This document shows, in pieces, positions 4,860-40,352 of a DNA stretch of 64,000 nt. A model generated the notes under the pieces. That model was not told the origin of the DNA and searched no databases. It was given only the letters and a program-made list of their open reading frames with translations. Position numbers and translations under genes: made by a program. The DNA lies in the NCBI RefSeq assembly GCF_964188315.1, contig NC_135656.1, forward strand, positions 120,714,001 through 120,778,000, in the 5' to 3' direction. The number at the start of each line of letters is the position of its first letter. The first letter of the stretch is position 1. Source of the DNA: Podarcis muralis. Its lineage: Eukaryota.

Positions 4860-7260
4860 GCGCCCATATTTTTCAAATAGCGTGCTCGGGATCTGAAAAC
4901 CAGCCTGGGGCGTTAAACTCTCTCAAGTCTCCCGCTTTGATCCGAACAAGGTCAAAGCTCTCCATTCCGTGGTTGGGTGGGGGTAGGAGAGGGGGCGACG
5001 ACTTGGGAGGTCGCCACGCCTCCTGCCCTGCAACGACCCCACCCTTCTTTTCGGCAGCCGTGACTATTTATACCCTTAGTTTGCAAAGCTTTCTCACACG
5101 CGTTTGCGGGGTCGAGGATAGATCGCTGTCTTTTCTTCTCTGGGGAACGTGTGGATTACTGTACTGGAAATCATCTTTCGTCCAGCTTCCAGCAGCGCCC
5201 CTTTGGCTACAGAGAGTAGGATCGTCTGCCTAAAACCCTGAGGTTGGTTCCTTTTTACAATTGCTATGAAGTCTTTTTTTTCTTCAAATTGCCCACGTAG
5301 CCAGATTTAGCTTAAACCGCTCGGTTGTACTGGGTTTAAGCGAGACATGGCTGCAGCGGCGATTTGAAAAACACAATTGCGCACTGTAAACACGTTAACG
5401 CATTGGCAGGATTTTAAGAACACTTGTAATTTTAGTAATAACAAATTTAGTTGGAATCGAAGGTGCTGCTACTGGAAGGATTTTTTTATTATTATTTTGC
5501 TTCGACTACGGCAAAATAATTTTTGATTTTGATTAAAAATCAAAATACAGGCTACCTACCTGTAACTTGTAATTTTAGGGACACTATAGAAAATCTGAAG
5601 GAAAAAAATATGGTAAAGGAACCAGGAGGGGGGGAGGAAAGTCACGGGATTCAGGGAATCCCGGGGGGGCGGGCGGTTTAATATTGCTTTAGTATATTTT
5701 TGTATTTTTCATTTTTTGTTACTGTGTGTTTTTATTCTGTATAAAACCTAGTAAAATGTTATATATTTTCGCATTACGAAAGGCAGTCCAAAACATCCAG
5801 AGGGCAAGCCGTTGCAGTTATTTGAAATTATGTTCTGCAAATAACAGCATCGGCTTGCCCTTTCGATGACTGCGACTACCTTTCGTAATGCGAAACCTCC
5901 AGAGGTCTAGCAACTTGGCGTGCGCTCCCGTTGACGCAGGGATTTGCTCCGGGGAAAAGCGGAGTGTGTGTGGCTCTGTCCCAATTGATAGATCCGATCT
6001 TTAAAAATCAAATAGAGATGGGAGTAGCGGGATTGGGGGCCTGGACAGAGAGGGGAGTTTTCTGAAAACTTTTGCCGGCAACCAGAAACTCTTTTCTCTC
6101 TCTCCCGACACCGCCGTCGCCAAAAAGGGATGTTTGGCACGTTGGGGAACCAGGGGCGGACTGCATTGCAAGAAGGGTCAGTGGCGCAGCATATGCCGTC
6201 GCTGCCCAGGGCAGGCGCGTTCCCAAGGGGCGCGGGGGGCGCGCTCCGAGGGGCGCGGAGAGTGCGCTCCCAGGCGCGGGATAGCCGCGCGCGCGCACCC
6301 ACCGATCCGGCTTCCTTCCCGCTCTCTCCCTTGCTTGCTTGCCTGCCTCCTCCAGCTCTGAGCGCGGGGCAATTGCGCACCACCTGCCCGTGACTCCCGC
6401 GCCTACAGCCAGGGGAAGGCGAGAGCTGCTGCTGCTGCGCGCTCCCGGCTGGGGAAGGCAGGCAAGCAAGCAGGACGGGAAGGAGACGCGCGCGCACCCA
6501 CCGATCCGGCTTCCTTCCCGCTCTCTCCCCTGCTTGCTTGCCTGCCTCCTCCAGCCCTGAGCGCGGGGCAATTGCGCACCGCCTGCCCGTGACTCCCGCG
6601 CCTACAGTCAGGGGAAGGCGAGAGCTGCTGCTGCTGCGCGCTCCCGGCTGGGGAAGGCAGGCAAGCAAGCAGGACGGGAAGGAGACGCGCGCGCACCCAT
6701 CAATCCGGCTTCCTTCCCGCTCTCTCCCCTGCTTGCTTGCCTGCCTCTTCCAGCCCTGAGCCCGGGGCAATTGCGCACCGCCTGCCCGTGACTCCCGCGC
6801 CTACAGCCAGGGGAAGGCGGGAGCTGCTGCTGCTGCGCGCTCCCGGCTGGAGAAGGCAGGCAAGCAAGCAAGCAAGCAGGGGAGAGGACGGGAAGGAGAC
6901 GGGCAAAGCGGCACAGCAGCAAGAAGCTGTAAAAATGTGTGTTTGGAAAGCGGGGAGGCGAAAGCCCTGGGGAAAAATTTGTCTGCACTCATGGGCTTAT
7001 TCAGGATTTTTGTTTGCTATGCGTTTTTCTTGCTTGGGTTCGGGCAGCTGCCACCCCCCCCCCCCACCACGCCGGCTGCGCCCATGCATGCAAAAGATTG
7101 TGAGGTTGAAAAGGAAATGCTTCAGGGAAACTTCTGCGTAACGACAGCCCTTCGGCCCCCCCTCGCTCATGCACGCGACCTATCTAGGCTCCGTTTCTCG
7201 CTCTTTGAAATCTTAAGACGTGGGTAGGCAAACTTAAGGCCCAGTTGCCTTCCGGACGGT
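4860..7260. promoter_or_regulatory. CpG island, probable promoter region of gene copy 1
   Basis: Dense CpG retained in all four units, ~2.7 kb upstream of the first coding acceptor; GC box ggggcgga near 6153. The TSS is not defined. Confidence 0.6.
6288..6900. repeat. GC-rich VNTR, 3 x 199 bp
   Basis: gcgcgcaccc recurs at 6291, 6490 and 6689. Confidence 0.95.
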
Positions 7261-8180: not shown

Positions 8181-9985
8181 TAGTTAAAAGCAAATATTGA
8201 AAACATTCAGAAGATTAAAATCCAGGGCAGTTAGTAAGAAAGGAAACACTTCTACATGTCAGGATTACATGGTGTGTTACAGAAATTAATGGAAAATTTC
8301 TAAAAATTTGTTGCCCCCCCCCCCCCCGCTAAATGCATTACACATAAAGTTAAGGGAGAAAAAGAGATGTTCAACAAATGGTTTTCCTCTGAGGTAAAGT
8401 TAAATTAGCTCTAGAAATGTACTGCAAAAAAACCAGTCATTTTTATCTTTCTTTATTAAAAAAATAAATGTCTGGATAGGCTTGCCTAAACAAAAATGTT
8501 TTAAGTGGGTGCTGAAAATAATTCAGCAAGGATGCCTGTTTGGTGTCAATAGACAGGCAGTTCCAAAGTTTAGGTGTTACCACACCCTGCATCAATTTAG
8601 CACCTCTTTTTGCTCACCTGTATTTAAATTGTTCTATGTATATTTTTGGGAGGGGCCATTGGTCAGTCTCATCTGGGGTGCAGTTGTCTGGGGTTGCAGG
8701 GGGCGAGTGGGTGGTAGACCCATTACGTTTTGGGGAGCAGGGTCCCTAAGACAGCATCCCAGGAGCCCCAGCACCCCAAAGGCGACTTCTGCCTCACCAC
8801 TGCAAAGTGCTGGTGCTATTTGCCCTCTTAGTAGCTAAATAGGTGCTTATATGCAGACTCACTGCAAAACATGGTCTGGAGCTTCATTAACTGCAAACCC
8901 TGAAATTTGGGGGCCCCTCCAAACTGGTGCCAAAGTTTTGCAATCCTTTCGCACTGCCCCTGAACCGTGTAATTGACTAGCCCCTGGTTCATAGTAATAC
9001 ATCAAACTGGGATCGCTAGAACAGGCATAGGCAAACTCGGCCCTCCAGATGTTTTGGACATTGGGTTTATTTGGTTAGATTTACAGATTATAGCCATCAT
9101 CCCTGACCACTGGTCCTGCTAACTAGGGATCATGGGAGTTATAAGTTCTGTGTTTTTAAAAAATGTTCTTTTTTTTCACATCCAGACATTTAATAATGTT
9201 ACGCCATTCTAAATTTCAATCACACCACAGTTGCCTGTTCTGTAATGTGAAAGGAAGGTTAGAAATGTAGATCCTGCCTTGTTTAGTGTTGTAGCACCTA
9301 CTCTACTTGCCTTCTGATCAAGCGCTTTTACGGCGCTTTTACGGTTGAGGGAATTTTAATAAGTTTTAGTTTTTTCGAAAAAATGTTTCAAAATGCAATG
9401 GGGTACCCTCCCTTGATGTTACAGTATTATCTTTTTTAAATTGATTTGAGGCTTTTAAAAAGCACACACAAAAAACCCAAGCAGTATAGAAATTCTATGA
9501 AATAAATTAATGCTATATTTCCAATAGTTTCTGAAACAGTGCCATGACCACACATGTTTCCTATTTCTGATGTGAGGCTTTTGCTTGTGGAAGAAAGTGC
9601 AGCAACAGGAAAAAATTGTATGTGTGTGTGTGGGGGGAAACACATGGTTTGGAGAAGAGTAAGTGACAAACTTGCAGAGAATAAAATCAACTTTTCTGCA
9701 AATCATCTGCACCTTGTTGTGAGTTGCAATCACTATGAGGTCCAAAAGACCTTGGGGATCAGTACAGAACCTGCAGGTTCTGACTTGGGAAATAAGGAGT
9801 TTCCAGCAACTTGGATGAATCCAAAAACTACAGTGCACATTTAAGCTCATACAAATTGCCTTCCATTAAATTTCAATGGGTGCTTCTATTGAAAAGCAGT
9901 GATTGATTGATTTTCTCTCTCTTTCTCTCCCACCAGAAAAAACTAGACTCTGCTGGATTGCTTCACAGTGACTGCCTCTTGCAGA

Positions 9986-11587
9986 ATGGGCAACCTGCAG
10001 AATAAGATGGAGAGGACAAACGAAAGGAACTGGTTGGGACCACAGTTCAGCATGAAAGAGGCATGGAGTGGTTCCCAAAACCCTATGGAAGAATCTCCAC
10101 TGGAGCCTTCCCAAGAGGATGATAAGAATTTTGTCCTGGCATTGGAGAGCAGCATGGAAGAAGAGAAGGAACCGTCCAGTTCTGACGTGCTGAACTTGCC
10201 GCTTCCAGCGCAAGCAGAAGCACATTGTGTCCAGGTTCCCCTGAACAGCACCCCAGGCGAGGTCCCAAAGCTGCGTAGAAGCAGGCGCCTCCTAAGACAG
10301 TCCTCCTCCCTTGAGCCAGAGGACACCACCACTATGGAGCCACCAGCAAAAAGGCAGAGGATCTCTTTTGTGTGGAGATACTTCACGACAACAAGTAAAT
10401 TTGTGGTCCAGTGCCGTGTCTGCCATAGGGCCGTTCGCCTTGGGAGGCCTGATGGTTGCCAACTGGTGGGAACCACGGCAATGCACAGTCACATGATGCG
10501 AAAGCACAGAGACGTCCTTGACAAGGCGTCAGAAAGTGGCAAGACTGCATCTTCCAGGCCTCGAACCCGGTCTGTCTCAGGCACCTTGAGGTCTCACTCC
10601 GCTCTTAATGAGGTAGCAGGAAGTGGCCAGATGACACCCTCCAGGCCTCACACTCGGTCCATGTCAGGCAGTTCTAGATTGCAGTCCACTCCGCCGACCT
10701 GTGTGGCATGCCAGCCAATGGAAGTCACTTTGCTAGAGAGCAACAGCAGCCAAGATTTTGAGTCCAGAGATGGCAACACTATGCTGGTACCGGAGGACTG
10801 TGCAAAGGCAAGGGCACTACCAGGACTCAAGGAAGGAGGAGCCTCTGGCTTCAAAAGGCCCCAAAAGAACCCACTTCAAAAGGTTGCCGCCAACATGGAA
10901 CCATCAGCCCATCGTGGGGAAACGTCTTTTGTGTGGAAACTCTTCGCCAAGGATGCCAATAGCAAATTTGCGGCCCGTTGCAGTCAAACTGTTAGTCTTG
11001 GGAAGCCCAGCGGCTGCCAGCAGGTGGGAGCCACCACAATGAACAGCCACCTCATGAAATGGCACAGAGATGTGGCTGACAAGGCCGAAAGAAGCAGCAG
11101 TACAACACGCTCCTTCCCTCCTAGGCAGAAAGAAAAGGCAAATGACCGGCTCTGTGGAGGAAAGATGGAAGAGCTAGGCTCTGTGGCAACTGACGCAGGG
11201 GAAAGAGCAAGGGTGGCTCCTCACTTTGTCCAGGCGAGGGACAGTGTGGCAGCCTCAAAGAGAACCGCACAGGAGATCCTGGGCGAGGAGGACGTCCTTG
11301 GCTCTGACGCTCGGCGCCAACGTTTCAGGCATTTCCGCTACCAGGAGGCCGAGGGGCCCCGAGAGGTTTGCAGCCAATTCCACCGCCTCTGCCAACAGTG
11401 GCTGAAGCCGAGGAGACTCACCAAGGCTCAGATGCTGGACCTGGTGATCCTGGAGCAGTTCCTGGCTGCCCTCCCCCCGGAGATGCAGAGCTGGGTCAAA
11501 GATTGTGGGCCGGAGACCAGCGCCGAGGCAGTGGCCCTGGCTGAAGGTTTTCTCATGAGCCAAGCGGAAGACCAGAAGGAGGCTGAG
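9986..11587 (+). CDS. Copy 1 coding exon 1: BED1 (10361-10507), degenerate BED2 (10922-11065), SCAN (~11291-11560)
   Basis: Acceptor ctctcccaccag/9937 and donor GAG/gtgaga. BED motif W-x2-F...CRVC...[17 protein letters not shown] motif [32 protein letters not shown]...LEQFLAALP. Confidence 0.93.
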
Positions 11588-14500
11588 GTGAGAGACTGTT
11601 TTGCTCTGGTAATTCCGAGGCCCTAAAATCCTTTATTTGCATTTGGATTCACTGCCTCGCGAAGTGCTGATCAATCTTCTAGCTGATAAATTAGACCCTC
11701 TCAGGTGCTGAGATCTGCAGATGGGGCCCTCTTGGTAGTCCTGCACCCTCAGGGGTTTGGTGGGTGGCAGAAGGCCTTCTCTGTGGTGGCCCCTAAGCTG
11801 TGGCACTCCTTCCCCACAGAGGCACATCTGGTACCTACATTATACGGCTTCCAGCGAATGCTGATGACGCTCATTTTTGCCCTGGCTTTTGAGGTGTATG
11901 CCTTTAGGACTCGCCTTCTATGAATCCAATTTTTGAATTGTTTTTAGTATTGTGTTTTACTGCTGCAACCTGCCCTGGGACCTTAGAGTGAAAGGGAGGG
12001 TAAATAATAATTATTAATGATGATGATACCGTATTGGCCCGAATATAAGCCGCTCCCTTCCTCGCTTTCTCCCTTCCCGGCCTTGGGGGAGAGGACATGG
12101 GACTACGCGTGGGACAGGCACCACTTTGCTGTGCTCCTGGCTGCATACTGGATAATTTTTGTAAGGTCGTGAATATAAGCTGCACTTTTAACTTTTCACG
12201 GTCGGAATTTGGGGGGAAAGTGCGGCTTATATACGGGCCAATACGGTAATAATAACTTAATACTTGAACATTGATTCATCTTGCGTTATTTAATGGCACC
12301 CCTGGCCTTTGCCTGACCTGTTTCCTGTCTCTCTCTCTCTCTCTCCCCCCCCCCCCACACTTTCTTGCATGGGTTCCTATCTCAGGCGCAGGAGATGTCA
12401 TCCAAAGCAACCTCACGTTTCATGGAGGCAGAGAACACCCTGCCAGATGCCACCGAGAGGCCGCTCTTCAGGGAGATCAAGCAGGAGGCTGACATGGGCA
12501 CCACCTTTCTGGGTAAGGACCATAACGGAGCAGGCTTCAACATAGCCTCTCCTTCTCTTGAATATGCCTGGATCCTGTGGTTAAATTACGGAGCCTAAAA
12601 CGCCTCCCCGTTTTCTTTGTCTTCTCCGTAGGATGTCAAACAACGTTTGGAGACAGCGAGATGGCCCCAGAGGTTCCTTCTAGGCCTCCTCCTCTTTGTG
12701 GTGGACTGGAAATGGCTTCTGCTCAGTTGGAACAGGTATGGGGTGGGTGGAATAGTTGGGGAGATGGGCAGGGGACCATCCAGGTTCCTTTTTCAGACCC
12801 TGCAAGAGGTGTGGGATTTGATGGGACATCCTCCTTTCAGGCTCCCGTGTCCCTTGAGGAGGTGGCAGTGCATTTCAAAGAGGATGAATGGGCTCTGCTG
12901 GATCCGGAGCAGAGAGCGCTGCACAAAGAAGTCATGGAGGAGAATTATGCGAGTCTGGTATCTCTAGGTAAGGCTCCTCCTTGGTTTTGGCTGCTAGATC
13001 CTGAAAGCAGGAATAGTTGCTGCTCTTTGTATGCGGCAGTGCATTGTGGGAAACGTCACGGCGTGTGACAGGGCCTTCTTTCAGACGTCTACATAGCTGT
13101 CAACTTTTCCCTTTTCTTGTGAGGAATCCTATTCGGAATAAGGGAATTTCCCTTTAAAAAAGGGAAACGTTGGCAGCTATGCGTCTCTTAAAAACTTTAC
13201 TTTTTAGTCTCATCTTTACAATATGGATTTCCCCTCCCCTTCAGCCAGCTAGTATCTGTTGCTGTTTTACTGATGTTTGTAAACACGTTTTACAGATATT
13301 AATTTTCATTATTTTAAAGTTTATTTATACTTTTCAAATTCATACATTTCATTAATTTCACAATCGTTTTAACATTTCAAAGTTTGGCTTCCTCCGCCCC
13401 CCCCCCCCTTTCGACGGTTCCTTAAATTTATTTTTTTAATATCTTCTGCATATACAAACACATTTAATTTGCTCATTTAATTATCTACTTTAAATATAAA
13501 CTCGAATGAAACTGCAGGTTATTGCACTAACCCTGCCAATGTTTTTATCTGTTTGCAATTTATCAGTAAATATTCACTAAGCCATTTCCATTCTTTTATA
13601 AAAAGTTTATCTTGATTTCTTATTCTTCCGGTAAATTTCGCCATTTCTGCATAGTCCATAAGTTTTTGCATCCTTGCTATTGTAGTCGCATACATAAATA
13701 AATTTCTATACAATTTAGGTAGTTCTGTCCCTAAATTTCCAAAAGAGAAGCTTCTGGTTTTTTTTCTTTCTTACAAAGGTTATTTTGAACATCCTCTTCA
13801 ATTCATTATATATCATTTCCCAATAAGCTTACTGGCTGACCATTTTACAGATATTTATTGACTGATTTAACGAGCTGCCTTGATATATGCTATGAAAGTG
13901 CAAATCAAAAAAATTCAAATAAATAAATAGTCAGTTAAATAAGCTCTGGCCCCATCCAAGCTATACATTTAAGACAGCATTATACCATTACCCAGGCCTA
14001 TGGCTATTAAATAATCTATGATCTGTAAAAGTGTGGGGACTATTATTATAATTAGGTTGTCTGTTAGAATGCTCTTTATTATGTTTTTGTCATTGATGCT
14101 GCGTAATGTGTTTTAATGTTGTACACCGCCCTAATAATATCTTCTTTCTCTTAAAAAAGGACTACCAGTTTCCAGATCTGACATCGCTTTGCAGAAAGAA
14201 TGGGAAAATGCATTCACTGAGGGCTGTGAAGAAGAGGAGAAATTAGCAGGTAGGAGCTGAATTGACATGAGGCTCCCTGCATTTTTAGCCTAGCAAGCTA
14301 TGCAAACACCTGGCAGACATTTTTATTTCTGTGTGACCAGACTCCCGTGCCCTCCTTAATTCAACTGGTGGGCACCAGAGGCAGGCAGGACCAGTGGCGT
14401 AGCGTGGGGGGTGCAGGGGGGGCCGGCCGCACCGGGCGCAACATCTGGGGTTAGGGCAAATCCATGGGTTAGGGGGCGCAAATCCACGGGTTAGGGGGCG

Positions 14501-15937
14501 CAAATTACTTGTCTTGCCCCGGGTGCTGACAACCCACGCTACGCCACTGGGCAGGACCTTTTTGGTAGTGTCTCCTGCACTCTGGAATTAATTTCTGAAA
14601 AGATATACAACAGGGGCTCCCCTCAGTTTAAGAAAGTCTTTATAAAAGCTTACCTGTTTTCTCTTACCTGTAACTGAATGCCGAAGAGGTAGCTCTCTAC
14701 CCTGGCCTTGAGACCTGAGACATGTTTTGAGAGCCTGCCCCTTTCCCAGGACTGTAATTTTTAAAATTCTTTTTAAAACTACAAATTTTAGATTGTTGTA
14801 AACCACCCCAGGACCTGCTGGCAGAGGGTGCGTAATAGATTTACTAATGCTAATAATTTATGCTACTTATTTCACGCACAAAAATACTTAGCACTTGATT
14901 ATAGAAAAACCTCAAAGCAAGGCACATGTTGTATCATCGAACTACAGCTATTTCCTTGCAGGATTTGGGTTGTGCTTCAGAGTTAAAACAGAAACCAAGG
15001 GTAAATTCAAATCATTAAAAATGGTAATAAACTACAAACACATCAGTATTCTAGATATCTGGGTAGACTTGCCTGAGCAAAAAACGTTTTTAGCAGGCCC
15101 CAAAAAGAGTACAGTGAAGGCACAATATGCAGGGAGTTCCGAAGTATAGAGACTGCCATACTAAAATATCAATTTCCCCAAAATGCGGAACATATTATGT
15201 GGCATGTGCAACAGTATCGGTTATTATTTCCTTTTCACCATCAGAGGCTGTTTGATGGAATTGAAAGGGATCTGCCTCCCCACTTAATATTTTCTGCTTT
15301 CTTTGATTTCTTTGAGTTTCCTTCCTTATTTGAGGACCTGTTCCTGATTTCTCTCTCGATTCTTTCAGGTGATGGGAGTGATAGTGATGAGGAAAACAGT
15401 CCTCAAAGAAAGCAGAAGCAGAAGAAGCGCTTGACGTCTGTAGGGACTGGCTTCCGTGGAGTTCCAATACTGGCAGAACGTCATGCAGGAAACAAAAGGA
15501 ATATTGAGAATGGAGAGAGGCTGTTGATGTGCTCAGAGTGTGGAAAGGGTTTCATTGGCTGGAAGAACCTTACTAAACATCAGAGAATCCACATGGGAGA
15601 AAAACCACATGAATACTCAGAGAACAGGAAGCCATTCTCTCGCAGCTCAGACCAGGGATTCCATGTTGGCACAAAGCCCTATAAATGCTCAGAGTGTGGA
15701 AAGAGCTTTGTTCAGAGCACGTACCTGCGAGTGCATAAAAGAATTCACACAGGGGAGAAGCCGTACAAATGCTTCGAGTGCGGAAAGAGCTTCGGCTGGA
15801 GCGGAAACCTCAACAGGCACCACAGAATCCACACAGGGGAGAAGCCGTATCAATGTTCCCAGTGTGAGAAGAGTTTCCGTCACGGATCAAGCCTTAAACT
15901 TCACCAGAGAATTCACGGAGGTGAACGCACTTTATAA
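9986..15937 (+). CDS. BED-BED-SCAN-KRAB-C2H2 zinc finger protein, copy 1 (872 aa, 6 coding exons)
   Basis: Exons 9986-11587, 12386-12512, 12632-12735, 12841-12967, 14160-14249, 15369-15937. All introns are GT-AG, phases 0/1/0/1/1 are consistent, total 2619 nt with no internal stop. An in-frame TAG at 9944 upstream of ATG 9986 fixes the start. Confidence 0.9.
11600..12010 (+). mobile_element. L2-clade LINE 3' fragment in coding intron 1
   Basis: [24 protein letters not shown]-like RT C-terminus and an L2-type tail. Confidence 0.7.
12029..12246. mobile_element. Tc1/mariner (pogo/Tc2-type) MITE in coding intron 1
   Basis: 25-bp TIR ccgtattggcccgaatataagccgc (1 mismatch) with TA on both sides; also at 29135-29345 and 47685-47901. 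Confidence 0.9.
12386..12512 (+). CDS. Copy 1 coding exon 2 (linker, PLFREIKQE motif)
   Basis: ctcag/GCG...CTGG/gtaagg, 127 nt, phase 0 to 1. Confidence 0.85.
12632..12735 (+). CDS. Copy 1 coding exon 3 (linker)
   Basis: tctccgtag/GA...CAG/gtatgg, 104 nt, phase 1 to 0. Confidence 0.83.
12841..12967 (+). CDS. Copy 1 coding exon 4: KRAB-A box
   Basis: [42 protein letters not shown]; canonical 127-nt KRAB-A exon; cctttcag/ and /gtaagg. Confidence 0.93.
13270..13825 (-). mobile_element. L1-clade LINE 3' fragment in the KRAB-A/KRAB-B intron
   Basis: [28 protein letters not shown] on the - strand, related to 1618-2253; also at ~30700-31262 and ~48880-49455. Confidence 0.8.
14160..14249 (+). CDS. 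Copy 1 coding exon 5: divergent KRAB-B box
   Basis: (G)[29 protein letters not shown](G) resembles the KRAB-B pattern GLPVSKPD...EEGEEP; 90 nt, phase 1-1, open in all three complete copies. Confidence 0.78.
14392..14549. mobile_element. Young hAT MITE, copy 1 only
   Basis: Perfect 17-bp TIR cagtggcgtagcgtggg and perfect 8-bp TSD ggcaggac; empty site in units 2 and 3. Confidence 0.95.
15369..15937 (+). CDS. Copy 1 coding exon 6: C2H2 array (4 intact fingers + 1 degenerate)
   Basis: tctttcag/GT; [10 protein letters not shown], then a Cys-less 24-aa finger, then three HTGEKP-linked fingers; stop TAA at 15935. Confidence 0.95.
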
Positions 15938-17546: not shown

Positions 17547-17928
17547 TTTGTTGTTGTTTAGTTGTTTAGTCGATTAGGACTCTTTGTGACCCCATGGACC
17601 AGAGCACGCCAGGCACTCCTGTCTTCCACTGCCTCCCGCAGTTTGGTCAGACTCATGCTGGTAGCTTCGAGAACACTGTCCAAGCTTCTCCTTGTGCCCT
17701 CCATCTTTCCCAACATCAGGGTCTTTTCCAGGGAGTCTTCTCTTCTCGTGAGGTGGCCAAAGTATTGGAGCCTCAGCTTCAGGATCTGTCCTTCCAGTGA
17801 GCACTCAGGGCTGATTTCCTTCAGAATGGAGAGGTCTGATCTTCTTGCAGTCCATGGGACTCTCAAGAGTCTTCTCCAGCACCCTAATTCAAAAGCATCC
17901 ATTCTTCGGCGATCAGCCTTCTTTATGG
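17547..17928 (-). mobile_element. 5'-truncated RTE-BovB LINE
   Basis: DAFELGCWRRLLRVPWTARRS..SLEKTLMLGK..AWRALVHGVTKS; 13-bp TSD atcttgtatttat at 17534 and 17929. Confidence 0.92.
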
Positions 17929-18188
17929 ATCTTGTATTTATAGTTTGCTTTTATTTTTATTTTATCCCAGAACTGCCCTGAGATCTTTTGATGAGAGATG
18001 GCATATAAATCTAATTGAAAAATATAAAAAATAAAATTGGTTAAAAAAAATCCTAACCCACCTGATTAAAAGATGAGCAGCACCATAGAAGGCACCGGCT
18101 TGGGGGGGGGGGGGAACACATTTGGTGTCTGAAATACTTTCATCACATGATGAAAGGTTAGCTACTAGAGATAAGGCAATCAGTTAAT

Positions 18189-18970
18189 CAGGGCTGGATT
18201 TAGAAGAAGAGAGGCCCTGGGCTGCTCCACTTGTGAGGCCCCTCCCCACCCTCACAGCTAAAAGATAATGAAAGAGTGTTATAAACAGTACTGAATGAAG
18301 ACAAGGATGCTCAAGGGTATTTAAAATTCTGCAATTCTCAATTTCTCCTCCAAAGGACATAAGATGTTATTGTTAAACGCCATGGTGATTTTTTAAAAAT
18401 GAAAAAAAATTAACACTGAAAAACTTTTGCAGTACCTGAACTTCGTAAACCTTTTGAGGAAGAAGCATTATTTTTTAGGAAAATGAAGTTGCAATGTCAT
18501 TCTTTAAAAAAACCACACACCTTGAGTTTACAAATTATATTGCCTGGGAAGTGTAAATAATATGATCATGATTAGCTGACAGTGTGGCACTTCTAGAATT
18601 TACTTTACGTTAAAACAAAAAAAAAATCCTTCCAGTAGCACCTTACTTTACGTTGTCATTAAAAAGTCAGTTTTAAAATACATATTAAGAAGTAAACTAC
18701 AACCATCAAATACAGTAAGGCTAAAATGTTTTCCTCTCCTAGCCTTCCTCATAGGAAAATCTTCATCAAAATTTGTTTGTCTAAGTTTGTCACTTTCAGT
18801 ATACAGAATGCTCAGTGTGGACAACCTTTCTTGAGACATTGTGGCCCTTAATTGATTTTTAATTCTTTTGAGTCTTGAAAAAAATCCTCTCTCCTGAGCA
18901 GCAAGTGACCATAGGGCTAAGAAATAGCTGCAAGATTGCTTCCACATTAGGAAAGGACACCTGGTGTTTT
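18189..18970 (-). mobile_element. Decayed hAT transposon 3' end, unit 2
   Basis: hAT-type terminus cagggctggattta at 18189; same remnant as 1-720. Confidence 0.8.
18612..18642. mobile_element. 31-bp Penelope-like terminal fragment with 12-bp TSD (units 2 and 3 only)
   Basis: ttactttacgtt flanks aaaacaaaaaaaaaatccttccagtagcacc, which matches the end of the insert at 30317. Confidence 0.75.
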
Positions 18971-19613
18971 CCCTTGTATATAATTTGATAAAGATGAGAC
19001 AGAGACTTCTCTGCTGTTTACAATCCAGGGGTATATAAGATTTCTGAAATAAAGTTTCCTGCAATGCAGGAATCAGAATTCGATCCTTTGCAGCCCTTTC
19101 AACTCTGCAGTTCTGTAATTCTGTGCGATATATATATATATAAGACATTGCATATATAAATTGCAATTTCAGCTGAATTTGCGGGAACCACTTGAAGCAT
19201 TCCTTGTGTTGAGCCATTTCCATTGCTTTTGTTTATTTCCTCATTGCAAACAGCTGAAAGTCTGTAAATGTTGATAATCAACTTGATTTTCAGTGGGTGG
19301 TTGAATAATTATAATTGCTACTGTAGATACATGCATATAGATTACATAGGTTTTGCCAGCCTTGGCTTCTTTCCTCTCCACCCCACCCCTTTTACATTTG
19401 CAAATGAAGCCAATCAAGCCAGGTAATTGCCCAGGGCATTCCCCATTGATAAGCAGATGAAGGTGAGGCTGGTGACCTACTTTTCTGCCCTCAAAGTCAA
19501 AGACTTGTTGCCATCCAGACCCCCAGGGGTCAAGTTAGTGATTAATTGGATTAGTTCAGTTTCACAGCCATAGCCTCACAGCTTTTGCCAACCTGGGAGT
19601 CCTTTTAAGTTTA

Positions 19614-21708: not shown

Positions 21709-23597
21709 CAGCTGAGATTCCTACATTGCAGTGGGTTGGACTAGATGACCCTTGGTGACCCCTTCCGATTCTATGATTGAAAGAGCCAGGGGGTAGTGCA
21801 GGACCTGGGTTCAAATCCTCACTCTCAGCCCTACCTACTTCACAGGGTTGTTGTTGGTGATTAAATGTGAAAAGCCCTGCATGCCAACTTTTTTGCTTCT
21901 TGGTGGAAAAGGCAGGAAATAAATAAATAAAATAAAATAAAATAAAATAAAATAAAATAAAATAAAATAATAAATAAAGACAGACCCCCCCCCAAGTGCG
22001 GTCTGCAAATGGTACCTGAGCCCAACACCCCTCTCCCCATCTGCAATTCCTGGCAACTGACATTCACAGAATCATCGGATTGCAGCGTTGGAACCAAAGG
22101 CTCATCTAATTCACCCCCCTACAAGAAGCTCCTTGGATGGGAAAAAAAAGAGAAGTGAATTAGATAAATGCAATAAACAAACAGTACAAAAAATAAAAAA
22201 ACGTGCTCAGGATATGAAAACTAGCCGGAGGCGTTAAACTCTCTCAATTCTCCCGCTTTGATCCGAACAAGGTCAAAGCTCTCCATTCCGTGGTTGGGGG
22301 TGGGGGTAGGAGAGGGGGCGACGACTTGGGAGGTCGCCACGCCTCCTGCCCTGCAACGACCCCACCCTTCTTTTCGGCAGCCGTGACTATTTATACCCTT
22401 AGTTTGCAAAGCTTTCTCACACGCGTTTGCGGGGTCGAGGAGAGATCGCTGTCTTTTCTTCTCTGGGGAACGTGTGGATTACTGTACTGGAAATCATCCG
22501 GCTTCCAGCAGCGCCCCTTTGGCTACAGAGAGTAGGATCGTCTGCCTAAAACCCTGAGGTTGGTTCCTTTTTACAATTGCTATGAAGTCTTTTTTCCTCA
22601 AATTGCCCACGCAGCCAAATTTAGCTTAAACCGCTCGGTTGTGCTGGGTTTAAGCGAAACAGGGCTGCAGCGGCGATTTGAGAAACACAATTGCGCACTG
22701 TAAACACGTTAACGCATTGGCAGGATTTTAAGAACACTTGTAATTTTAGTAATAACAAATTTAGTTGGTCTCTAAGGTGCTACTACTGGAGGGATTTTTT
22801 ATTATTATTATTTTGCTTCGACTACGGCAGACCAACACGGCTACCTACCTGTAACTTGTAATTTTAGGGACACTATAGAAAATCTGAAGGAAAAATAAGA
22901 TATGCAGTAGAAAAAAATATGGTAAAGGAACCAGGAGAGGGGGGGAGGAAAGTCACGGGATTCAGGGAATCCCGGGGGGGCGGGCGGTTTAATATTGCTT
23001 TAGTATATTTTTGTATTTTTCATTTTTGTTACTGTGTGTTTTTATTCTGTATAAAACCTAGTAAAATGTTATATATTTTCGCATTACGAAAGGTAGTCCA
23101 AAACATACAGAGGGCAAGCCGATGCAGTTATTTGAAATTATGTTCTGCAAATAACAGCATCGGCTTGCCCTTTCGATGACTGCGACTACCTTTCGTAATG
23201 CGAAACCTCCAGAGGTCTAGCAACTTGGCGTGCGCTCCCGTTGACGCAGGGATTTGCTCCCGGGAAAAGCGGAGTGTGTGTGGCTCTGTCCCAATTGATA
23301 GATCCGATCTTTAAAAATCAAATAGAGATGGGAGTAGCGGGATTGGGGGCCTGGACAGAGAGGTGAGTTTTCTGAAAACTTTTGCCGGCAACCAGAAACT
23401 CTTTTCTCTCTCTCCCGACACCGCCGTCGCCAAAAAGGGATGTTTGGCACGTTGGGGAACCAGGGGCGGACTGCATTGCAAGAAGGGTCAGTGGCGCAGC
23501 ATATGCCGTCGCTGCCCAGGGCAGGCGCGTTCCCAAGGGGCGCGGGGGGCGCGCTCCGAGGAGCGCGGAGAGTGCGCTCCCAGGCGCGGGATAGCCG

Positions 23598-24012
23598 CGC
23601 GCGCGCACCCACCGATCCGGCTTCCTTCCCGCTCTCTCCCTTGCTTGCTTGCCTGCCTCCTCCAGCTCTGAGCGCGGGGCAATTGCGCACCGCCTGCCCG
23701 TGACTCCCGCGCCTACAGTCAGGGGAAGGCGAGAGCTGCTGCTGCTGCGCGCTCCCGGCTGGGGAAGGCAGGCAAGCAAGCAGGACGGGAAGGAGACGCG
23801 CGCGCACCCATCAATCCGGCTTCCTTCCCGCTCTCTCCCCTGCTTGCTTGCCTGCCTCCTCCAGCCCTGAGCGCGGGGCAATTGCGCACCGCCTGCCCGT
23901 GACTCACGCGGCTACAGTTCAGGGGAAGGCGAGAGCTGCTGCTGCTGCGCGCTCCCGGCTGGAGAAGGCAGGCAAGCAAGCAAGCAAGCAGGGGAGAGGA
24001 CGGGAAGGAAAC
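23598..24012. repeat. GC-rich VNTR, 2 x 199 bp
   Basis: Recurs at 23601 and 23800. Confidence 0.95.
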
Positions 24013-27000: not shown

Positions 27001-27089
27001 AAAGCAGTGATTGATTTTCTCTCTCTTTCTCTCCCTCCAGAAAAAACTAGACTTTGCTGGATTGCATCACAGTGACGGCCTCTTGCACA

Positions 27090-28697
27090 ATGGGCAACCT
27101 GCAGAATAAGATGGAGAGGACAAACGAAAGGAACTGGTTGGGACCACAGTTCAGCATGAAAGAGGCATGGAGTGGTTCCCAAAACCCTATGGAAGAATCT
27201 CCACTGGAGCCTTCCCAAGAGGATGATAAGAATTTCGTCCTGGCATTGGAGAGCAGCATGGAAGAAGAGAAGGAACCGTCCAGTTCTGACGTGCTGAACT
27301 TGCCGCTTCCAGCGCAAGCAGAAGCACATTGTGTCCAGGTTCCCCTGAACAGCACCCCAGGCGAGGTCCCAAAGCTGCGTAGAAGCAGGCGCCTCCTAAG
27401 ACAGTCCTCCTCCACGTCCCTTGAGCCAGAGGACACCACCACTATGGAGCCACCAGCAAAAAGGCAGAGGATCTCTTTTGTGTGGAGATACTTCACGACA
27501 ACAAGTAAATTTGTGGTCCAGTGCCGTGTCTGCCATAGGGCCGTTCGCCTTGGGAGGCCTGATGGTTGCCAACTGGTGGGAACCACTGCAATGCACAGTC
27601 ACATGATGCGAAAGCACAGAGACGTCCTTGACAAGGCGTCAGAAAGTGGCAAGAGTGCATCTTCCAGGCCTCGAACCCGGTCTGTCTCAGGCACCTTGAG
27701 GTCTCACTCCGCTCTTAACGAGGTAGCAGGAAGTGGCCAGATGACACCCTCCAGGCCTCACACTCGGTCCATGTCAGGCAGTTCTAGATTGCAGTCCACT
27801 CCGCCGACCTGTGTGGCATGCCAGCCAATGGAAGTCACTTTGCTAGAGAGCAACAGCAGCCAAGATTTTGAGTCCAGAGATGGCAACACTTTGCTGGTAC
27901 CGGAGGACTGTGCAAAGGAAAGGGCACTACCAGGACTCAAGGAAGGAGGAGCCTCTGGCTTCAAAAGGCCCCAAAAGAACCCACTTCAAAAGGTTGCATG
28001 CAACATGGAACCATCAGCCCATCGTGGGGAAACGTCTTTTGTGTGGAAACTCTTCGCCAAGGATGCCAATAGCAAATTTGCGGCCCGTTGCAGTCAAACT
28101 GTTAGTCTTGGGAAGCCCAGCGGCTGCCAGCAGGTGGGAACCACCACAATGAACAGCCACCTCATGAAATGGCACAGAGATGTGGCTGACAAGGCCGAAA
28201 GAAGCAGCAGTACAACACGCTCCTTCCCTCCTAGGCAGAAAGAAAAGGCAAATGACCGGCTCTGTGGAGGAAAGATGGAAGAGCTAGGCTCTGTGGCAAC
28301 TGACGCAGGGGAAAGAGCAAGGGTGGCTCCTCACTTTGTCCAGGCGAGGGACAGTGTGGCAGCCTCAAAGAGAACCACACAGGAGATCCTGGGCGAGGAG
28401 GACGTCCTTGGCTCTGACGCTCGGCGCCAACGTTTCAGGCATTTCCGCTACCAGGAGGCCGAGGGGCCCCGAGAGGTTTGCAGCCAATTCCACCGCCTCT
28501 GCCAACAGTGGCTGAAGCCGAGGAGACTCACCAAGGCTCAGATGCTGGACCTGGTGATCCTGGAGCAGTTCCTGGCTGCCCTCCCCCCGGAGATGCAAAG
28601 CTGGGTCAAAGATTGTGGGCCGGAGACCAGCGCCGAGGCAGTGGCCCTGGCTGAAGGTTTTCTCATGAGCCAAGCGGAAGACCAGAAGGAGGCTGAG
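27090..28697 (+). CDS. Copy 2 coding exon 1 (BED, BED, SCAN)
   Basis: Homologous to 9986-11587 with a 6-nt in-frame insertion (QSSSTSL). Confidence 0.92.
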
Positions 28698-31600
28698 GTG
28701 AGAGACTGTTTTGCTCTGGTAATTCCGAGGCCCTAAAATCCTTTATTTGCATTTGGATTCACTGCCTCGCGAAGTGCTGATCAATCTTCTAGCTGATAAA
28801 TTAGACCCTCTCAGGTGCTGAGATCTGCAGATGGGGCCCTCTTGGTAGTCCTGCACCCTCAGAGGTTTGGTGGGTGGCAGAAGGCCTTCTCTGTGGTGGC
28901 CCCTAAGCTGTGGCACTCCTTCCCCACAGAGGCACATCTGGTACCTACATTATACGGCTTCCAGCGAATGCTGATGACGCTCATTTTTACCCTGGCTTTT
29001 GAGGTGTATGCTTTTAGGACTCTCCTTACTTCTATGAATCCAATTTTTGAATTGTTTTTAGTATTGTGCAACCTGCCCTGGGACCTTAGAGTGAAAGGGA
29101 GGGTAAATAATAATTATTAATAATGATGATGATACTGTATTGGCCCGAATATAAGCTGCTCCCTTCCTCGCTTTCTCCCTTCCCGGCCTTGGGGGAGAGG
29201 ACGGGGGACTACGCGTGGGACAGGCACCACTTTGCTGTGCTGCATACTGGATAATTTTTGTAAGGTCGTGAATATAAGCTGCACTTTTAACTTTTCACGG
29301 TCGGAATTTGGGGGGAAAGTGCGGCTTATATACGGGCCAATACGGTAATAATAACTTAATACTTGAACATTGATTCATCTTGCGTTATTTAATGGCACCC
29401 CTGGCCTTTGCCTGACCTGTTTCCCGTCTCTCTCTCTCTCTCTCTCTCTCTCCCCCACACACTTTCTTGCATGGGTCCCTATCTCAGGCGCAGGAGATGC
29501 CATCCACAGCAACCTCACGTTGCATGGAGACAGAGAACACCCTCCCAGGTGCCACCGAGAGGCCGCTCTTCAGGGAGATCAAGCAGGAGGCTGACATGGG
29601 CACCACCTTTCTGGGTAAGGACCATAACGGAGCAGGCTTCAACATAGTCTCTCCTTCTCTTGACTATGCCTGGATCCTGTGGTTAAATTACGGAGCCTAA
29701 AACGCCTCCCCGTTTTCTTTGTCTTCTCCGTAGGATGTCGAACAACGTTTGGAGACACCGAGATGGCCCCAGAGGTTCCTTCTAGGCCTCCTCCTCTTTG
29801 TGGTGGACTGGAAATGGCTTCTGCTCAGTTGGAACAGGTACGGGGTGGGTGGAATCGTTGGGGAGACGGTTGGAATCACCCAGTGAGAGGTGTGGGATTT
29901 GATGGGACATCCTCCTTTCAGGCTCCCGTGTCCCTTGAGGAGGTGGCAGTGCATTTCAAAGAGGATGAACGGGCTCTGCTGGATCCGGGCCAGAGAGCGC
30001 TGCACAAAGAAGTCATGGAGGAGAATTATGCGAGTCTGGTATCTCTAGGTAAGGCTCCTCCTTGGTTTTGGCTGATAGATCCTGAAAGCAGGAATAGTTG
30101 CTGCTCTTTGTATGCGGCAGTGCATTGTGGGAAACGTCACGGCGTGTGACAGTAGCTGACAGGGCCTTTAGTGTGGCAGTCTCCACCCTGCCTTCTTTCA
30201 GGCGTCTACATAGCTGTCAACATTTCCTTTTTATTGCGAGGAATCCTATTCGGAATAAGGGAATTTCCCTTTAAAAAAGGGAAACGATGACAGCTATGTC
30301 TCTCTTAAAAACTTTAAAAACAAAAAAATTTCCTTCAAGTAGCACCTTAAAGACCAACTAAGTTAGTTCTTGGTATGAGCTTTCGTGTGCATGCACACTT
30401 CTTCAGATACACTGAAACAGAAGTTGCCAGATCCTTCTATATAGTGAGAAGGTGGGGAGGGGTATTACTCAGAAGGGTGGTGGGAATGGGTGATTGGCAG
30501 ATAGCTGTGATGAGCCTGTTGACAACCCTTAACGACTGCAATAGATCTTTAGTTGGTCTTTAAGGTGCTACTGGAAGGAATTTTTTTTGTTTTGACTATG
30601 GCAGACCAACACGGCTACCTATCTGTAACTGTTAAAACCTTTACTTTTTAGTTACCTCTTTACAATATGGATTCCCCCCCCCCCTTCAGCCAGCTAGTAT
30701 CTGTTGCTCTTTTACTGATGTTTGCAAACACGTTTTACAGATATTTATTTTCATTATTTTCAAGTTTATTTATACTTTTCAAATTTCAACATTTCATTAA
30801 TTTCGCAATCATTTCAACATTTCAAAGTTTGGCTTCCTCCGCCCCCCCCCCCTTCTGCAGTTCCTTAAATTTATTTTTTTAATATCTTCTGCATATCCAA
30901 ACTCATTTAATTTGCTCATTTAATTATCTACTTTAAATACAAACTCGAATGAAACTGCAGGTTATTGCAGTAATCCTGCCAATGTTTTTATCTGTTTGCA
31001 ATTTATCTGTAAATATTCACTAAGCCATTTCCATTCTTTTATAAAAAGTTTATCTTGATTTCTTATTCTTCTGGTAAATGTCGCCATTTCTGCATAGTCC
31101 ATAAGTTTTTGCATCCTTGCTATTGTAGTCGCATACATAAATAAATTTCTATACAATTTAGGTAGTTCTGTCCCTAAATTCCCAAAAGAGAAGGGTTTTT
31201 TGTTGTTTTTTTTTACAAAGGTTATTTTGAACATCCTCTTCAATTCATTATATATCATTTCCCAGTAAGCTTACTGGCTTACCATTTTACAGATATTTAT
31301 TGACAGATTTAATTGAATTTATGCCACGAGCTGCCTTGATATATGCTATGAAAGTGCAAATCAAAAAAATTCAAATAAATAAATAGTCAGTTAAATAAGC
31401 TCTGGCCCCATCCAAGCTATACATTTAAGACAGCATTACAGTGGTACCTCGCAAGACGAACGCCTCGCAAGACGGAAAACCCGCTAGACGAAAGGGTTTT
31501 CCGTTTCGGAGGCGCTTCGCAAAACGAATTTCCCTATGGGCTTGCTTCGCAAGACGACAGCCCATAGGGAAATCTCCGGGACAGCGGGGAAGCGCAGCGC

Positions 31601-35845: not shown

Positions 35846-36226
35846 TTGTTGTTGTTTAGTTGTTTAGTCGATTAGGACTCTTTGTGACCCCATGGACCAG
35901 AGCACGCCAGGCACTCCTGTCTTCCACTGCCTCCCGCAGTTTGGTCAGACTCATGCTGGTAGCTTCGAGAACACTGTCCAAGCTTCTCCTTGTGCCCTCC
36001 ATCTTTCCCAACATCAGGGTCTTTTCCAGGGAGTCTTCTCTTCTCGTGAGGTGGCCAAAGTATTGGAGCCTCAGCTTCACGATCTGTCCTTCCAGTGAGC
36101 ACTCAGGGCTGATTTCCCTAAGAATGGAGAGGTTTGATCTTCTTGCAGTCCATGGGACTCTCAAGAGTCTTCTCCAGCACCCTAATTCAAAAGCATCCAT
36201 TCTTTGGCGATCAGCCTTCTTTATGG
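35846..36226 (-). mobile_element. 5'-truncated RTE-BovB LINE, unit 2
   Basis: Same TSD; shares the internal deletion with unit 1. Confidence 0.92.
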
Positions 36227-36488
36227 ATCTTGTATTTATAGTTTGCTTTTATTTTTATTTTATCCCAGAACTGCCCTGAGATCTTTTGATGAGAGATGGC
36301 ATATAAATCTAATTGAAAAATATAAAAAATAAAATTGGTTAAAAAAAATCCTACCCCACCTGATTAAAAGATGAGAAGCACCATAGAAGGCACCGGCTTG
36401 GGGGGGGGGGGGGAAACACCTTTGGTGCCTGAAATACTTTCATCACATGATGAAAGGTTAGCTACTAGAGATAAGGCAATCAGTTAAT

Positions 36489-37270
36489 CAGGGCTGGATT
36501 TAGCAGAAGAGAGGCCCTGGGCTGCTCCACTTGTGAGGCCCCTCCCCACCCTCACAGCTAAAAGATAATGAAAGAGTGTTATAAACAGAACTGAATGAAG
36601 ACAAGGATGCTCAAGGGTATTTAAAATTCTGCAATTCTCAATTTCTCCTCCAAAGGACATAAGATGTTATTGTTAAACGCCATGGTGATTTTTTAAAAAT
36701 GAAAAAAAATTAACACTGAAAAACTTTTGCAGTACCTGAACTTCGTAAACCTTTTGTGGAAGAAGCATTACTTTTTAGGAAAATGAAGTTGCAATGTCAT
36801 TCTTTAAAAAAACCACACACCTTGAGTTTACAAATTATATTGCCTGGGAAGTGTAAATAATATGACCATGATTAGCTGCCAGTGTGGCACTTCTAGAATT
36901 TACTTTACGTTAAAACAAAAAAAAAAATCCTTCCAGTAGCACCTTACTTTACGTTGTCATTAAAAAGTCAGTTTTAAAATACATATTAAGAAGTAAACTA
37001 CAACCATCAAATACAGTAAGGCTAAAATGTTTTCCTCTCCTAGCCTTCCTCATAGGAAAATCTTCATCAAAATTTGTTTGTCTAAGTTTGTCACTTTCAG
37101 TATACAGAATGCTCAGTGTGGACAACCTTTCTTGAGACATTGTGGCCCTTAATTGATTTTTAATTCTTTTGAGTCTTGAAAAAAATCCTCTCTCCTGAGC
37201 AGCTAGTGACCATAGGGCTAAGAAATAGCTGCAAGATTGCTTCCACATTAGGAAAGGACACCTGGTGTGT
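36489..37270 (-). mobile_element. Decayed hAT transposon 3' end, unit 3
   Basis: As for unit 2. Confidence 0.8.
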
Positions 37271-38500
37271 TCCCTTGTATATAATTTGATAAAGATGAGA
37301 CAGAGACTTCTCTGCTGTTTACAATCCAGGGGTATATAAGATTTCTGAAATAAAGTTTCCTGCAATGCAGGAATCAGAATTCGATCCTTTGCAGCCCTTT
37401 CAACTCTGCAGTTCTGTAATTCTGTGCGATATATATATATATAAGACATTGCATATATAAATTGCAATTTCAGCTGAATTTGCGGGAACCACTTGAAGCA
37501 TTCCTTGTGTTGAGCCATTTCCATTGCTTTTGTTTATTTCCTCGTTGCAAACAGCTGAAAGTCTGTAAATGTTGATAATCAACTTGATTTTCAGTGGGTG
37601 GTTGAATAATTATAATTGCTACTGTAGATACATGCATATAGATTACATAGGTTTTGCCAGCCTTGGCTTCTTTCCTCTCCACCCCACCCCTTTTACATTT
37701 GCAAATGAAGCCCATCAAGCCAGGTAATTGCCCAGGGCATTCCCCATTGATAAGCAGATGAAGGTGAGGCTGGTGACCTACTTTTCTGCCCTCAAAGTCA
37801 AAGACTTGTTGCCATCCAGACCCCCAGGGGTCAAGTTAGTGATTAATTGGATTAGTTCAGTTTCACAGCCATAGCCTCACAGCTTTTGCCAACCTGGGAT
37901 GTCCTTTTAAGTTTACAGATAGGTAGCCATGTTGGTCTGCCATAGTCAAAACAAAAAAATATTCCTTCCAGTAGCTCCTACTGGAAGGAATATTTTTTTC
38001 TTTTAAGTTTAGTCAGGAATGTGTCTGGATACAACTGAAGATTCTTTCTACCCTCTGCAAGGCAGGGTGTGTTTGAAGTTTCAACACTCCAGGTGCTACA
38101 GGTCATAAGAAGATTATTTTATTCTTCTTGTAAACCACTCTGTGAGGTTTTTGTGTCGGACAAGCAGTATCTAAATTGAGAATTTGAGAATTTGAGAGAT
38201 GAATCATTTTACCATTTCTGGGGCTTACAGACTGCCTTTTATACATCAGTGTAGAGGTATACAAATTAAAAATTGAAATGAAATATTTCCTTTTAGTTTT
38301 GTAAAGGAATGTTAACAGAGAATATTTATTCAACACACACATTAAATAAACAAGGGCATTTTTCACTGACCTGGCTGCATTTGGAAATATTTAATATAGA
38401 GGTCAATTTCATGTAGGTGCATATATGGGCATCTTAGAGGGCTTGTATTTATGCTTACTGTATCCATAATGTGAACTGATGGTGACATTCCATTATTCAT

Positions 38501-40215: not shown

Positions 40216-40352
40216 NNNNNNNNNNNNNNNNNNNNNNNNNNNNNNNNNNNNNNNNNNNNNNNNNNNNNNNNNNNNNNNNNNNNNNNNNNNNNNNNNNNNN
40301 NNNNNNNNNNNNNNNNNNNNNNNNNNNNNNNNNNNNNNNNNNNNNNNNNNNN
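40216..40352. other. Assembly gap (137 N)
   Basis: N run at the position of the (AAAAT)n + poly-C tract of the other units. Confidence 0.99.

Follow-up and report, generated by a model that had tools for sequence, protein, structure and literature searches.

Organization of the Locus

The stretch of Podarcis muralis DNA analyzed here, referred to below as the window, comprises 64,000 nucleotides of contig NC_135656.1 (assembly GCF_964188315.1, forward-strand positions 120,714,001 to 120,778,000) and is numbered from its first base. It holds a tandem array of one gene whose product places a BED finger in front of SCAN, KRAB and C2H2 zinc-finger segments. As established by tblastn with three large open reading frames (ORFs) of the interval annotated initially, the array comprises three full copies and the beginning of a fourth, with ATGs at 9986, 27090, 45627 and 63529 and a period of 17.1-18.5 kb; the first 9985 bases of the window are the tail of the preceding unit. 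With four ATGs and whole units that are 95-96.5% identical end to end, introns and intergenic DNA included, the tandem amplification proposed in an initial annotation of this sequence is clear.

Mapping of pieces of gene model P0001 by tblastn places six exons on the plus strand in each of copies 1-3, with all junctions GT-AG and phases of 0/1/0/1/1. In copy 1 an ORF at 9968-11626 has its first ATG at 9986, with A at -3 and G at +4. Exon 1 (9986-11587) encodes an N-terminal extension that contains the finger BED1 and the remnant of a second, BED2, followed by an ancestral Met and a SCAN domain (11306-11569, Pfam SCAN 124 bits); it ends at a phase 0 donor (GAG followed by gt) and matches residues 1-537 of gene model P0183 at 99.4%. 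Exons 2 (12386-12512, 127 nt, phase 0 to 1, placed by tblastn and GT-AG) and 3 (12632-12735, 104 nt) encode linker, the latter holding the Met where split KRAB-C2H2 models begin. The KRAB-A box lies in exon 4 (12841-12967, Pfam KRAB 66 bits) and a KRAB-B-like segment in exon 5 (14160-14249, phase 1 to 1), which gave no Pfam match when scanned alone. Exon 6 (15369-15937, stop codon 15935-15937) provides a further linker and the C2H2 fingers (Pfam zf-C2H2 and zf-H2C2_2), of which four are intact (15530-15592, 15686-15748, 15770-15832 and 15854-15916) and one, at 15608-15664, is degenerate, with both Cys lost. The SCAN scores are 123-124 bits against a cut-off of 27, and the KRAB scores 55-66 bits.

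Copy 2 (27090-34231; exons 27090-28697, 29488-29614, 29734-29837, 29922-30048, 32673-32762 and 33654-34231) is 100% identical in all six exons to P0001, an existing 877-residue gene model. In copy 3 (45627-51457; exons 45627-47243, 48022-48149, 48269-48372, 48478-48604, 49839-49928 and 50880-51457) the frame is broken: DNA alignment shows that the G-run at 48132-48135, in exon 2, has one extra G relative to copies 1 and 2 and to Zootoca, which leads to a stop at codon 598, in exon 3, if all six exons are used. Dropping exons 2 and 3 restores a frame of 803 residues. Only the start of exon 1 of copy 4 (63529-64000) lies in the window, ending at its edge and matching residues 1-157 of P0182 at 100%; the remainder was read in locus L006, which overlaps the window at 56198-64000. 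Open six-exon frames of 872, 877 and 877 residues are thus found in copies 1, 2 and 4, respectively, and in these KRAB-A is followed in one frame by tandem C2H2 repeats (four fingers with TGEKP-type linkers), an arrangement that is broken in copy 3. The initial annotation had BED, SCAN, KRAB and C2H2 joined in frame in every complete copy; this holds for copies 1 and 2 and fails for copy 3 by the single inserted nucleotide of exon 2.

The N-Terminal Extension and Its Host Gene

The boundary between the host gene and the added sequence was located by alignment. When exon 1 was compared by BLASTP with 118 ordinary squamate SCAN zinc-finger proteins, homology began at residues 390-442 and never before residue 390, and the alignments to 22 of the 118 began at Met396 of P0001, which corresponds to subject residue 1 in every listed case. 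This Met (Met394 of copy 1, codon 11165-11167 on the plus strand) opens the motif MEELGS, the counterpart of the usual MDEQ or MEEQ start of ordinary paralogues. Because Met396 is aligned with Met1 of these paralogues the host gene is a standard SCAN-KRAB-C2H2 gene, and the ∼395 residues upstream of its old start codon are, as judged from the alignments, an in-frame extension that shares its exon with SCAN. No intron separates the BED from SCAN.

One Canonical and One Degenerate BED Finger

BED1 (10364-10516, plus strand) retains an intact CxxC...HxxxxH pattern. A BED finger had been predicted at 10361-10507, and the Pfam zf-BED profile (PF02892) indeed matches nucleotides 10370-10510 with 28.4 bits against a cut-off of 20.6; this finger scores 27.6-28.4 bits in Podarcis and, in Zootoca, 24.9 bits. 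Among solved structures the BED finger of ZBED2 (2DJR; E = 0.002) aligns with BED1, Cys and His ligands included. The BED modules share the distinctive motif VW-xF ... C-x2-C ... VRLGK-GGC-x-VGTT-AM-xH ... H.

BED2 (10925-11074, plus strand) is a degenerate duplicate of BED1, with 48% identity over 81 residues (E = 4e-24), and gave no Pfam match in Podarcis or Zootoca, even at E ≤ 1. Its CxxC pair is reduced to one Cys, through a three-residue deletion in Podarcis and through Arg in place of the first Cys in Zootoca, so that the four zinc ligands (Cx2C...Hx3-5H) are complete in BED1 and incomplete in BED2, which probably acts as a spacer. The description of a single exon encoding two BED fingers and a SCAN domain is therefore right as regards SCAN and one Pfam-valid BED; the second BED is a decayed duplicate, and only BED1 is both canonical and constrained.

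Origin of the BED Module

A phmmer search with the extension against 1.84 billion representative proteins returned 53 matches. Apart from relatives in lacertids and Rhineura these are BED-bearing proteins, several of them full hAT transposase-like sequences with a Dimer_Tnp_hAT domain. Carriers of this domain with the same BED subtype are P0132 and P0136 from ticks (Dermacentor, Ixodes), P0143 from Phrynocephalus, P0162 and P0150 from Sceloporus, P0163 from Eublepharis, and P0156; they are 31-48% identical to BED1, and the BED is recognized by Pfam in all but P0143, where it is a BLAST match. The transposase-type character assigned earlier to the BED is borne out by this co-occurrence with the hAT dimerization domain. 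The remainder of a transposase was not seen: tblastn of seven hAT-domain relatives (nine queries in all) against the window matched only the BED segments and no other transposase part, and Pfam found no hAT domain in P0001.

In a tree of BED modules lacertid BED1 and BED2 form one clade with Rhineura modules A and C (support 97), which is sister to gecko modules (support 94) among squamate hAT BEDs, and the intact Rhineura module C is the one with which BED2 groups (support 83). A single clade, together with the similarity of BED1 to BED2, fits one capture followed by duplication within the exon.

The BED subtype is found elsewhere as well. The tick hAT proteins P0132 and P0136, which have two tandem BEDs, are among the nearest full-length relatives, with 35-48% identity over the finger. 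Lizards are hosts of ticks and horizontal transfer between the two is conceivable, with the likeness confined to a short domain. Geckos carry the subtype in P0125, P0128, P0121 and P0122 and at loci L003 (Eublepharis macularius) and L004 (Heteronotia binoei); in some gecko proteins two BEDs follow a coiled-coil-like N-terminus, and tandem series of 5 and of 10 BED fingers occur in Gekko kuhli proteins. We considered gecko P0125 and P0128 as orthologues and rejected them, there being no SCAN, KRAB or C2H2 segment within 10 kb of their loci. From these comparisons the BED module seems to have been shuffled repeatedly in squamate genomes.

Age of the Fusion

The same layout extends well beyond Podarcis. 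Zootoca vivipara has two loci ∼190 kb apart (L001 and L005), each with six intact exons, canonical splice sites and a predicted product of 903 residues. In the amphisbaenian Rhineura floridana a single exon encodes a homologous N-terminus with three BED modules followed by SCAN, and downstream of it lie an exon-2-like piece, a KRAB-A segment (76% identical) and a C2H2 exon. The middle Rhineura module is frameshifted in the copy that was read, and the SCAN-proximal one is intact, at 22.8 bits; decay of BED2 is therefore specific to lacertids. Since Rhineura and the lacertids have the layout in common, the fusion predates the split of Lacertidae and Amphisbaenia, which published timetrees place well over 100 million years ago.

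Among the matches, the N-terminal BED extension occurs only in Podarcis, Zootoca and Rhineura genes. Predicted proteins with the same architecture are public for P. lilfordi (877 residues, "zinc finger protein 2 homolog") and P. raffonei (880 residues), and together with the Zootoca and Rhineura genes they show that the arrangement is no novelty of the present species. As to whether it has been described, our literature searches found no published account of a BED-SCAN-KRAB-C2H2 architecture, in agreement with the initial annotation, although predicted proteins sit in databases under uninformative names.

One Product or Two

For copies 1 and 2, as for P. lilfordi and P. raffonei, the gene models connect all exons. 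Other models are split. Copy 3 is annotated publicly as P0185, a 582-residue BED-SCAN protein, and P0181, a 289-residue KRAB-C2H2 protein. Copy 4 is modeled, despite its intact frame, as the 606-residue P0182, which reads through the 119-nt intron 2, and a 289-residue KRAB-C2H2 protein, and Zootoca L005, again despite an intact six-exon frame, as adjacent 598-residue BED-SCAN and 296-residue KRAB-C2H2 proteins. In both cases the KRAB-C2H2 model begins at the Met in exon 3. Zootoca models split after exon 2, or after exon 1 at L001, where there is only a BED-SCAN model; P0204 represents the second locus. In Zootoca P0002 the exon 1 donor is used and the protein ends in an alternative terminal exon within intron 1 (L001 ∼11887-11925). 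The homologous region of Podarcis intron 1 (11705-11923) contains a similar repeat-like ORF, and the P0002 terminal exon may be an exonized interspersed repeat.

These models raise the possibility that the locus makes mainly two proteins, a BED-SCAN adaptor or competitor that resembles SCAND1, has no effector domain and would bring the DNA binding of its BED to other SCAN zinc-finger proteins, and a plain KRAB-C2H2 repressor that starts at the exon 3 Met, with the full-length form minor or only predicted. The alternative terminal exon of P0002 and the two-part calls in intact frames at L005 and copy 4 speak for such a division, and copy 3 could yield no more than the short form without skipping of exons 2 and 3. 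Set against this are the models that do join all exons, the compatible phases and strong splice signals of exons 2 and 3 in five of six lacertid copies, and the fact that a joined SCAN-KRAB-C2H2 protein is the default among the ∼100 paralogues found. When the part of P0001 that spans the SCAN-to-KRAB junction was used as a query, only genome-derived models came back, among them the Zootoca paralogue P0204, and no transcript-assembly fragments. On balance we regard a division into two main products as possible but less likely than not. It does not exclude a full-length protein, however, and it is plausible that the full-length form and a short BED-SCAN form both exist.

Selection and Divergence of the Copies

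In order to compare constraint between segments we used the ratio of nonsynonymous to synonymous change (pN/pS) between Podarcis and Zootoca, with one-sided Fisher p values. BED1 has the lowest value of any segment, 0.21 (p = 0.0016), followed by the C2H2 array (0.36, p = 0.005), KRAB-A (0.37, p = 0.09) and SCAN (0.52, p = 0.095). The extension as a whole (residues 1-395) gives 0.59 (p = 0.0014), and neither BED2 (0.70) nor the inter-BED linker (0.82) is significant. By this sequence measure BED1 is under purifying selection and BED2 appears near-neutral. All exon 1 indels between Podarcis and Zootoca are in frame. Comparisons of exon with intron divergence between copies gave mixed results and are not used as evidence of selection.

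The BED stretch could in principle have no function; it would then be an extended 5' leader or an upstream ORF belonging to an ordinary SCAN-KRAB-C2H2 gene, or part of an array of decaying pseudogenes. The frameshift of copy 3, the near-neutral values for BED2 and the linkers, and an internal Met at the position of residue 1 of ordinary paralogues all speak for this. It is nevertheless highly improbable, given that in four Podarcis and two Zootoca copies the frame remains open for ∼395 codons from a shared ATG with only in-frame indels, that BED1 is the most constrained segment, that the N-terminus is still recognizable in Rhineura and that the start codon at 9986 is flanked by A at -3 and G at +4.

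In coding sequence the four Podarcis copies are 1.5-2.9% divergent and the two Zootoca copies 2.4%, whereas the two species differ by ∼10%. Copies cluster by species, which indicates independent recent duplication or concerted evolution. A few predicted DNA-contact residues vary between copies; position 2 of finger 1, for example, is K, L or M.

Proposed History and Function

Taken together, we find it probable that the array belongs to a lacertid and amphisbaenian subfamily of SCAN-KRAB-C2H2 genes with an acquired BED extension. In a common ancestor of lacertids and amphisbaenians the first coding exon would have gained, ahead of the original start, an in-frame extension of ∼395 residues that carried an ATG of its own. 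The extension would have brought in a BED finger of the hAT transposase type without catalytic or dimerization parts, and the module would then have been duplicated inside the exon, to give two modules in lacertids and three in Rhineura. In lacertids the first module presumably stayed canonical under purifying selection, while the second lost a zinc ligand and drifts. The whole gene would later have been amplified independently in Podarcis, by tandem segmental duplication of 17-18 kb, and in Zootoca, and the copies appear now to be starting to diverge or decay, with copy 3 frameshifted and a few DNA-contact residues changed.

By analogy with related proteins the full-length product would be a sequence-specific chromatin repressor that dimerizes through SCAN and reads DNA through BED1 and four C2H2 fingers, with KRAB recruiting the co-repressor TRIM28. 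Of the KRAB residues that contact TRIM28 (ZNF93 numbering; PMC9753469), Glu17, Glu35, Asn36 and the aliphatics at 40 and 43 are kept in KRAB-A. Alongside the full-length product there is probably a shorter BED-SCAN form, which use of an alternative terminal exon or retention of intron 2 (119 nt) would generate.

Several observations weigh against this picture. Two KRAB-A positions differ from strong TRIM28 binders, Tyr29 being His and Leu34 being Glu. Since BED2 is degenerate, to speak of tandem BED fingers overstates the DNA-binding capacity of the protein. Exons and introns of copies 1 and 3 are both 2.9% diverged, and constraint on the youngest paralogues is not evident there. Because models are split in spite of intact frames, the case for splicing of exon 1 to the KRAB and C2H2 exons rests on what is predicted for copies 1 and 2 and for P. 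lilfordi and P. raffonei. Finally, AlphaFold2 modeling of exon 1 from a 10-sequence alignment was too poor to use (mean predicted local distance difference test score, pLDDT, 31; predicted template modeling score, pTM, 0.20).

The manner in which the BED was acquired deserves separate comment. A classical and recent host-transposase fusion like KRABINER, in which an intronic hAT insertion is spliced in through a transposon-borne acceptor, is scarcely credible here: the mechanism is well documented (it held for 8 of the 9 fusions whose birth Cosby et al. traced; bioRxiv 10.1101/2020.05.07.082677) and squamate fusions in that order exist (Eublepharis P0163 and Sceloporus P0150), but it is contradicted by an exon structure in which the BED is N-terminal, in the SCAN exon with no intervening intron and upstream of the ancestral ATG, and further by the tblastn result that the window holds no catalytic or dimerization remnant of the matching hAT family and by the presence of the fusion in Rhineura, which makes it old. 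Under the history proposed above, an N-terminal BED within an existing exon suggests a route of capture other than through a splice acceptor.

In hAT transposases, BED fingers bind to the terminal and subterminal repeats; that BED1 still recognizes hAT ends, as the initial annotation suggested alongside a possible bridging of two loci, is speculation. The ideas above can be combined into a broader proposal, which we put forward tentatively and would ourselves rate as doubtful in its entirety: a second capture route would have grafted a BED module with its own ATG into the 5' leader of a SCAN exon, the resulting family would keep both transposase-derived and C2H2 readers, alternative processing at intron 1 or 2 would toggle between a full repressor and a BED-SCAN adaptor able to redirect other SCAN zinc-finger proteins, and the products would engage hAT-derived sequences of lacertoid genomes.

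Other Features of the Array

CpG-island-like blocks (GC content 0.6-0.7, observed/expected CpG 0.66-0.95) occur once per unit, 3-4 kb upstream of each ATG, at 6001-7000, 23251-24000, 41501-42500 and 59751-60500. Such a block is a likely candidate for a promoter or 5' non-coding exon. Inside the copy 1 block (GC content 0.65-0.70, observed/expected CpG 0.67-0.86) Tandem Repeats Finder (TRF) reports a 199-bp tandem repeat at 6288-6870 (2.9 copies). Long ORFs across the block vary between units, and the number of repeats may vary as well.

A minus-strand ORF of 157-191 residues is present once per unit (393-896, 18648-19223, 36949-37524 and 55115-55588), ∼2.7 kb downstream of each last exon. One of its motifs, which we took to resemble the C-terminal dimerization region of hAT transposases, was unsupported by any tool. 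The ORF (for example 18648-19223) was considered as a hAT C-terminal remnant or donor element and dropped, as nothing matched: it gave no Pfam match at E ≤ 1, none among solved structures and no tblastn match to BED-bearing hAT transposases. A plus-strand ORF of 139-146 residues, also once per unit (17562-17981, 35860-36279 and 54003-54443), has no Pfam match and resembles the translation of an interspersed repeat more than a gene. On the minus strand an antisense ORF of 177-182 residues overlies exon 1 in every copy (9943-10476, 27047-27586 and 45584-46132); the simplest explanation is that the GC-rich coding strand gives rise to it as a by-product.

Compared with copies 1 and 3, copy 2 has an intron 4 with ∼1.4 kb of additional sequence. 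This sequence, at ∼31440-32250, is CpG-rich (observed/expected up to 1.03), with long ORFs on both strands and internally repeated peptide motifs, and probably arose by insertion of a young transposon. The intergenic part of unit 2 contains 137 consecutive N at 40216-40352, which none of the additional loci read overlaps. Scans of the window for tRNAs and with Rfam found no non-coding RNA.

Comparison with Known Systems

Fusions between transposase DNA-binding domains and host domains such as KRAB and SCAN are an established class and a recognized source of new vertebrate transcription factors, with hAT elements as common donors (Cosby et al., bioRxiv 10.1101/2020.05.07.082677). In the same study 8 of 9 traced fusions were born by splicing to a transposon-borne splice site, and KRAB-transposase fusions repressed reporters with the cognate terminal repeats. 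The lizard family resembles these fusions in combining a transposase DNA-binding domain with KRAB and SCAN, in purifying selection on the transposase part and in expansion by duplication. In the fusions of Cosby et al., however, the transposase part is usually C-terminal, acquired by capture of a splice acceptor, and typically replaces the zinc-finger array, whereas in the lizard family the BED is N-terminal, ahead of the old ATG within the SCAN exon, and the C2H2 array has not been lost. Birth through a splice site is the typical route of host-transposase fusions and not a strict definition of them, and the lizard family departs from it. It is unusual also in the internal duplication of the BED, followed by partial decay. 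Retention of the C2H2 array leaves two unrelated DNA-reading modules in one KRAB/SCAN protein.

A second point of reference is the ZBED family, in which hAT-derived BED fingers likewise serve as host DNA-binding modules; SCAN is joined to sequence of hAT origin in ZBED9/SCAND3, and several BED fingers are present in ZBED4. The dimerization region of hAT is retained in ZBED proteins, which lack KRAB and C2H2 segments, while the lizard protein has no part of hAT except the BED. A UniProt record in the same 90%-identity cluster as the window proteins is named "Zinc finger BED-type containing 4"; given that the lizard protein is otherwise a standard SCAN-KRAB-C2H2 protein with only the BED derived from hAT, the name reflects annotation transfer and not orthology. 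According to one report (PMC8097297), the hAT zf-BED region has been domesticated many times independently as a sequence-specific DNA binder. The CGGBPs, unlike the lizard family, have a stand-alone BED with a Hermes-type DNA-binding domain and no SCAN, KRAB or C2H2 partner.

The host background is equally familiar. SCAN zinc-finger genes have expanded in squamates and their products bind transposon sequences (bioRxiv 10.1101/2025.03.03.638093). From Met396 on the lizard protein matches the members of squamate SCAN(-KRAB) expansions and the mammalian ZKSCAN proteins (PMC3971581), also in exon phases and in tandem clustering, but ordinary squamate members, more than 100 paralogues aligned from their own Met1, are without the N-terminal BED extension. 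Closer in content are Eublepharis P0163 (SCAN-KRAB-C2H2-BED-hAT) and Sceloporus P0150 (SCAN-BED-hAT), which have the same BED subtype; with their C-terminal order and retained hAT dimerization domain both look like classical captures. Pfam lists also reveal SCAN-KRAB proteins with other transposon domains (MULE transposase and FLYWCH, or a Tc5/CENP-B-type helix-turn-helix), namely P0118 of Hemicordylus capensis and P0085 of Sceloporus undulatus. In all four of these proteins the transposon part is C-terminal to SCAN or KRAB, unlike in the lizard family. The survey suggests that capture of transposases by SCAN-KRAB genes is frequent in squamates.

The fusion has persisted since before the Lacertidae-Amphisbaenia split and is still being amplified and pruned in living lacertids, and the intact, frameshifted and split copies that lie side by side offer a natural system in which to study the effects of a captured finger on KRAB/SCAN targeting. 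Viewed against the systems above, the lizard chimera is real and old, yet it is an undescribed form of a known route by which transcription factors are built and no new kind of system.

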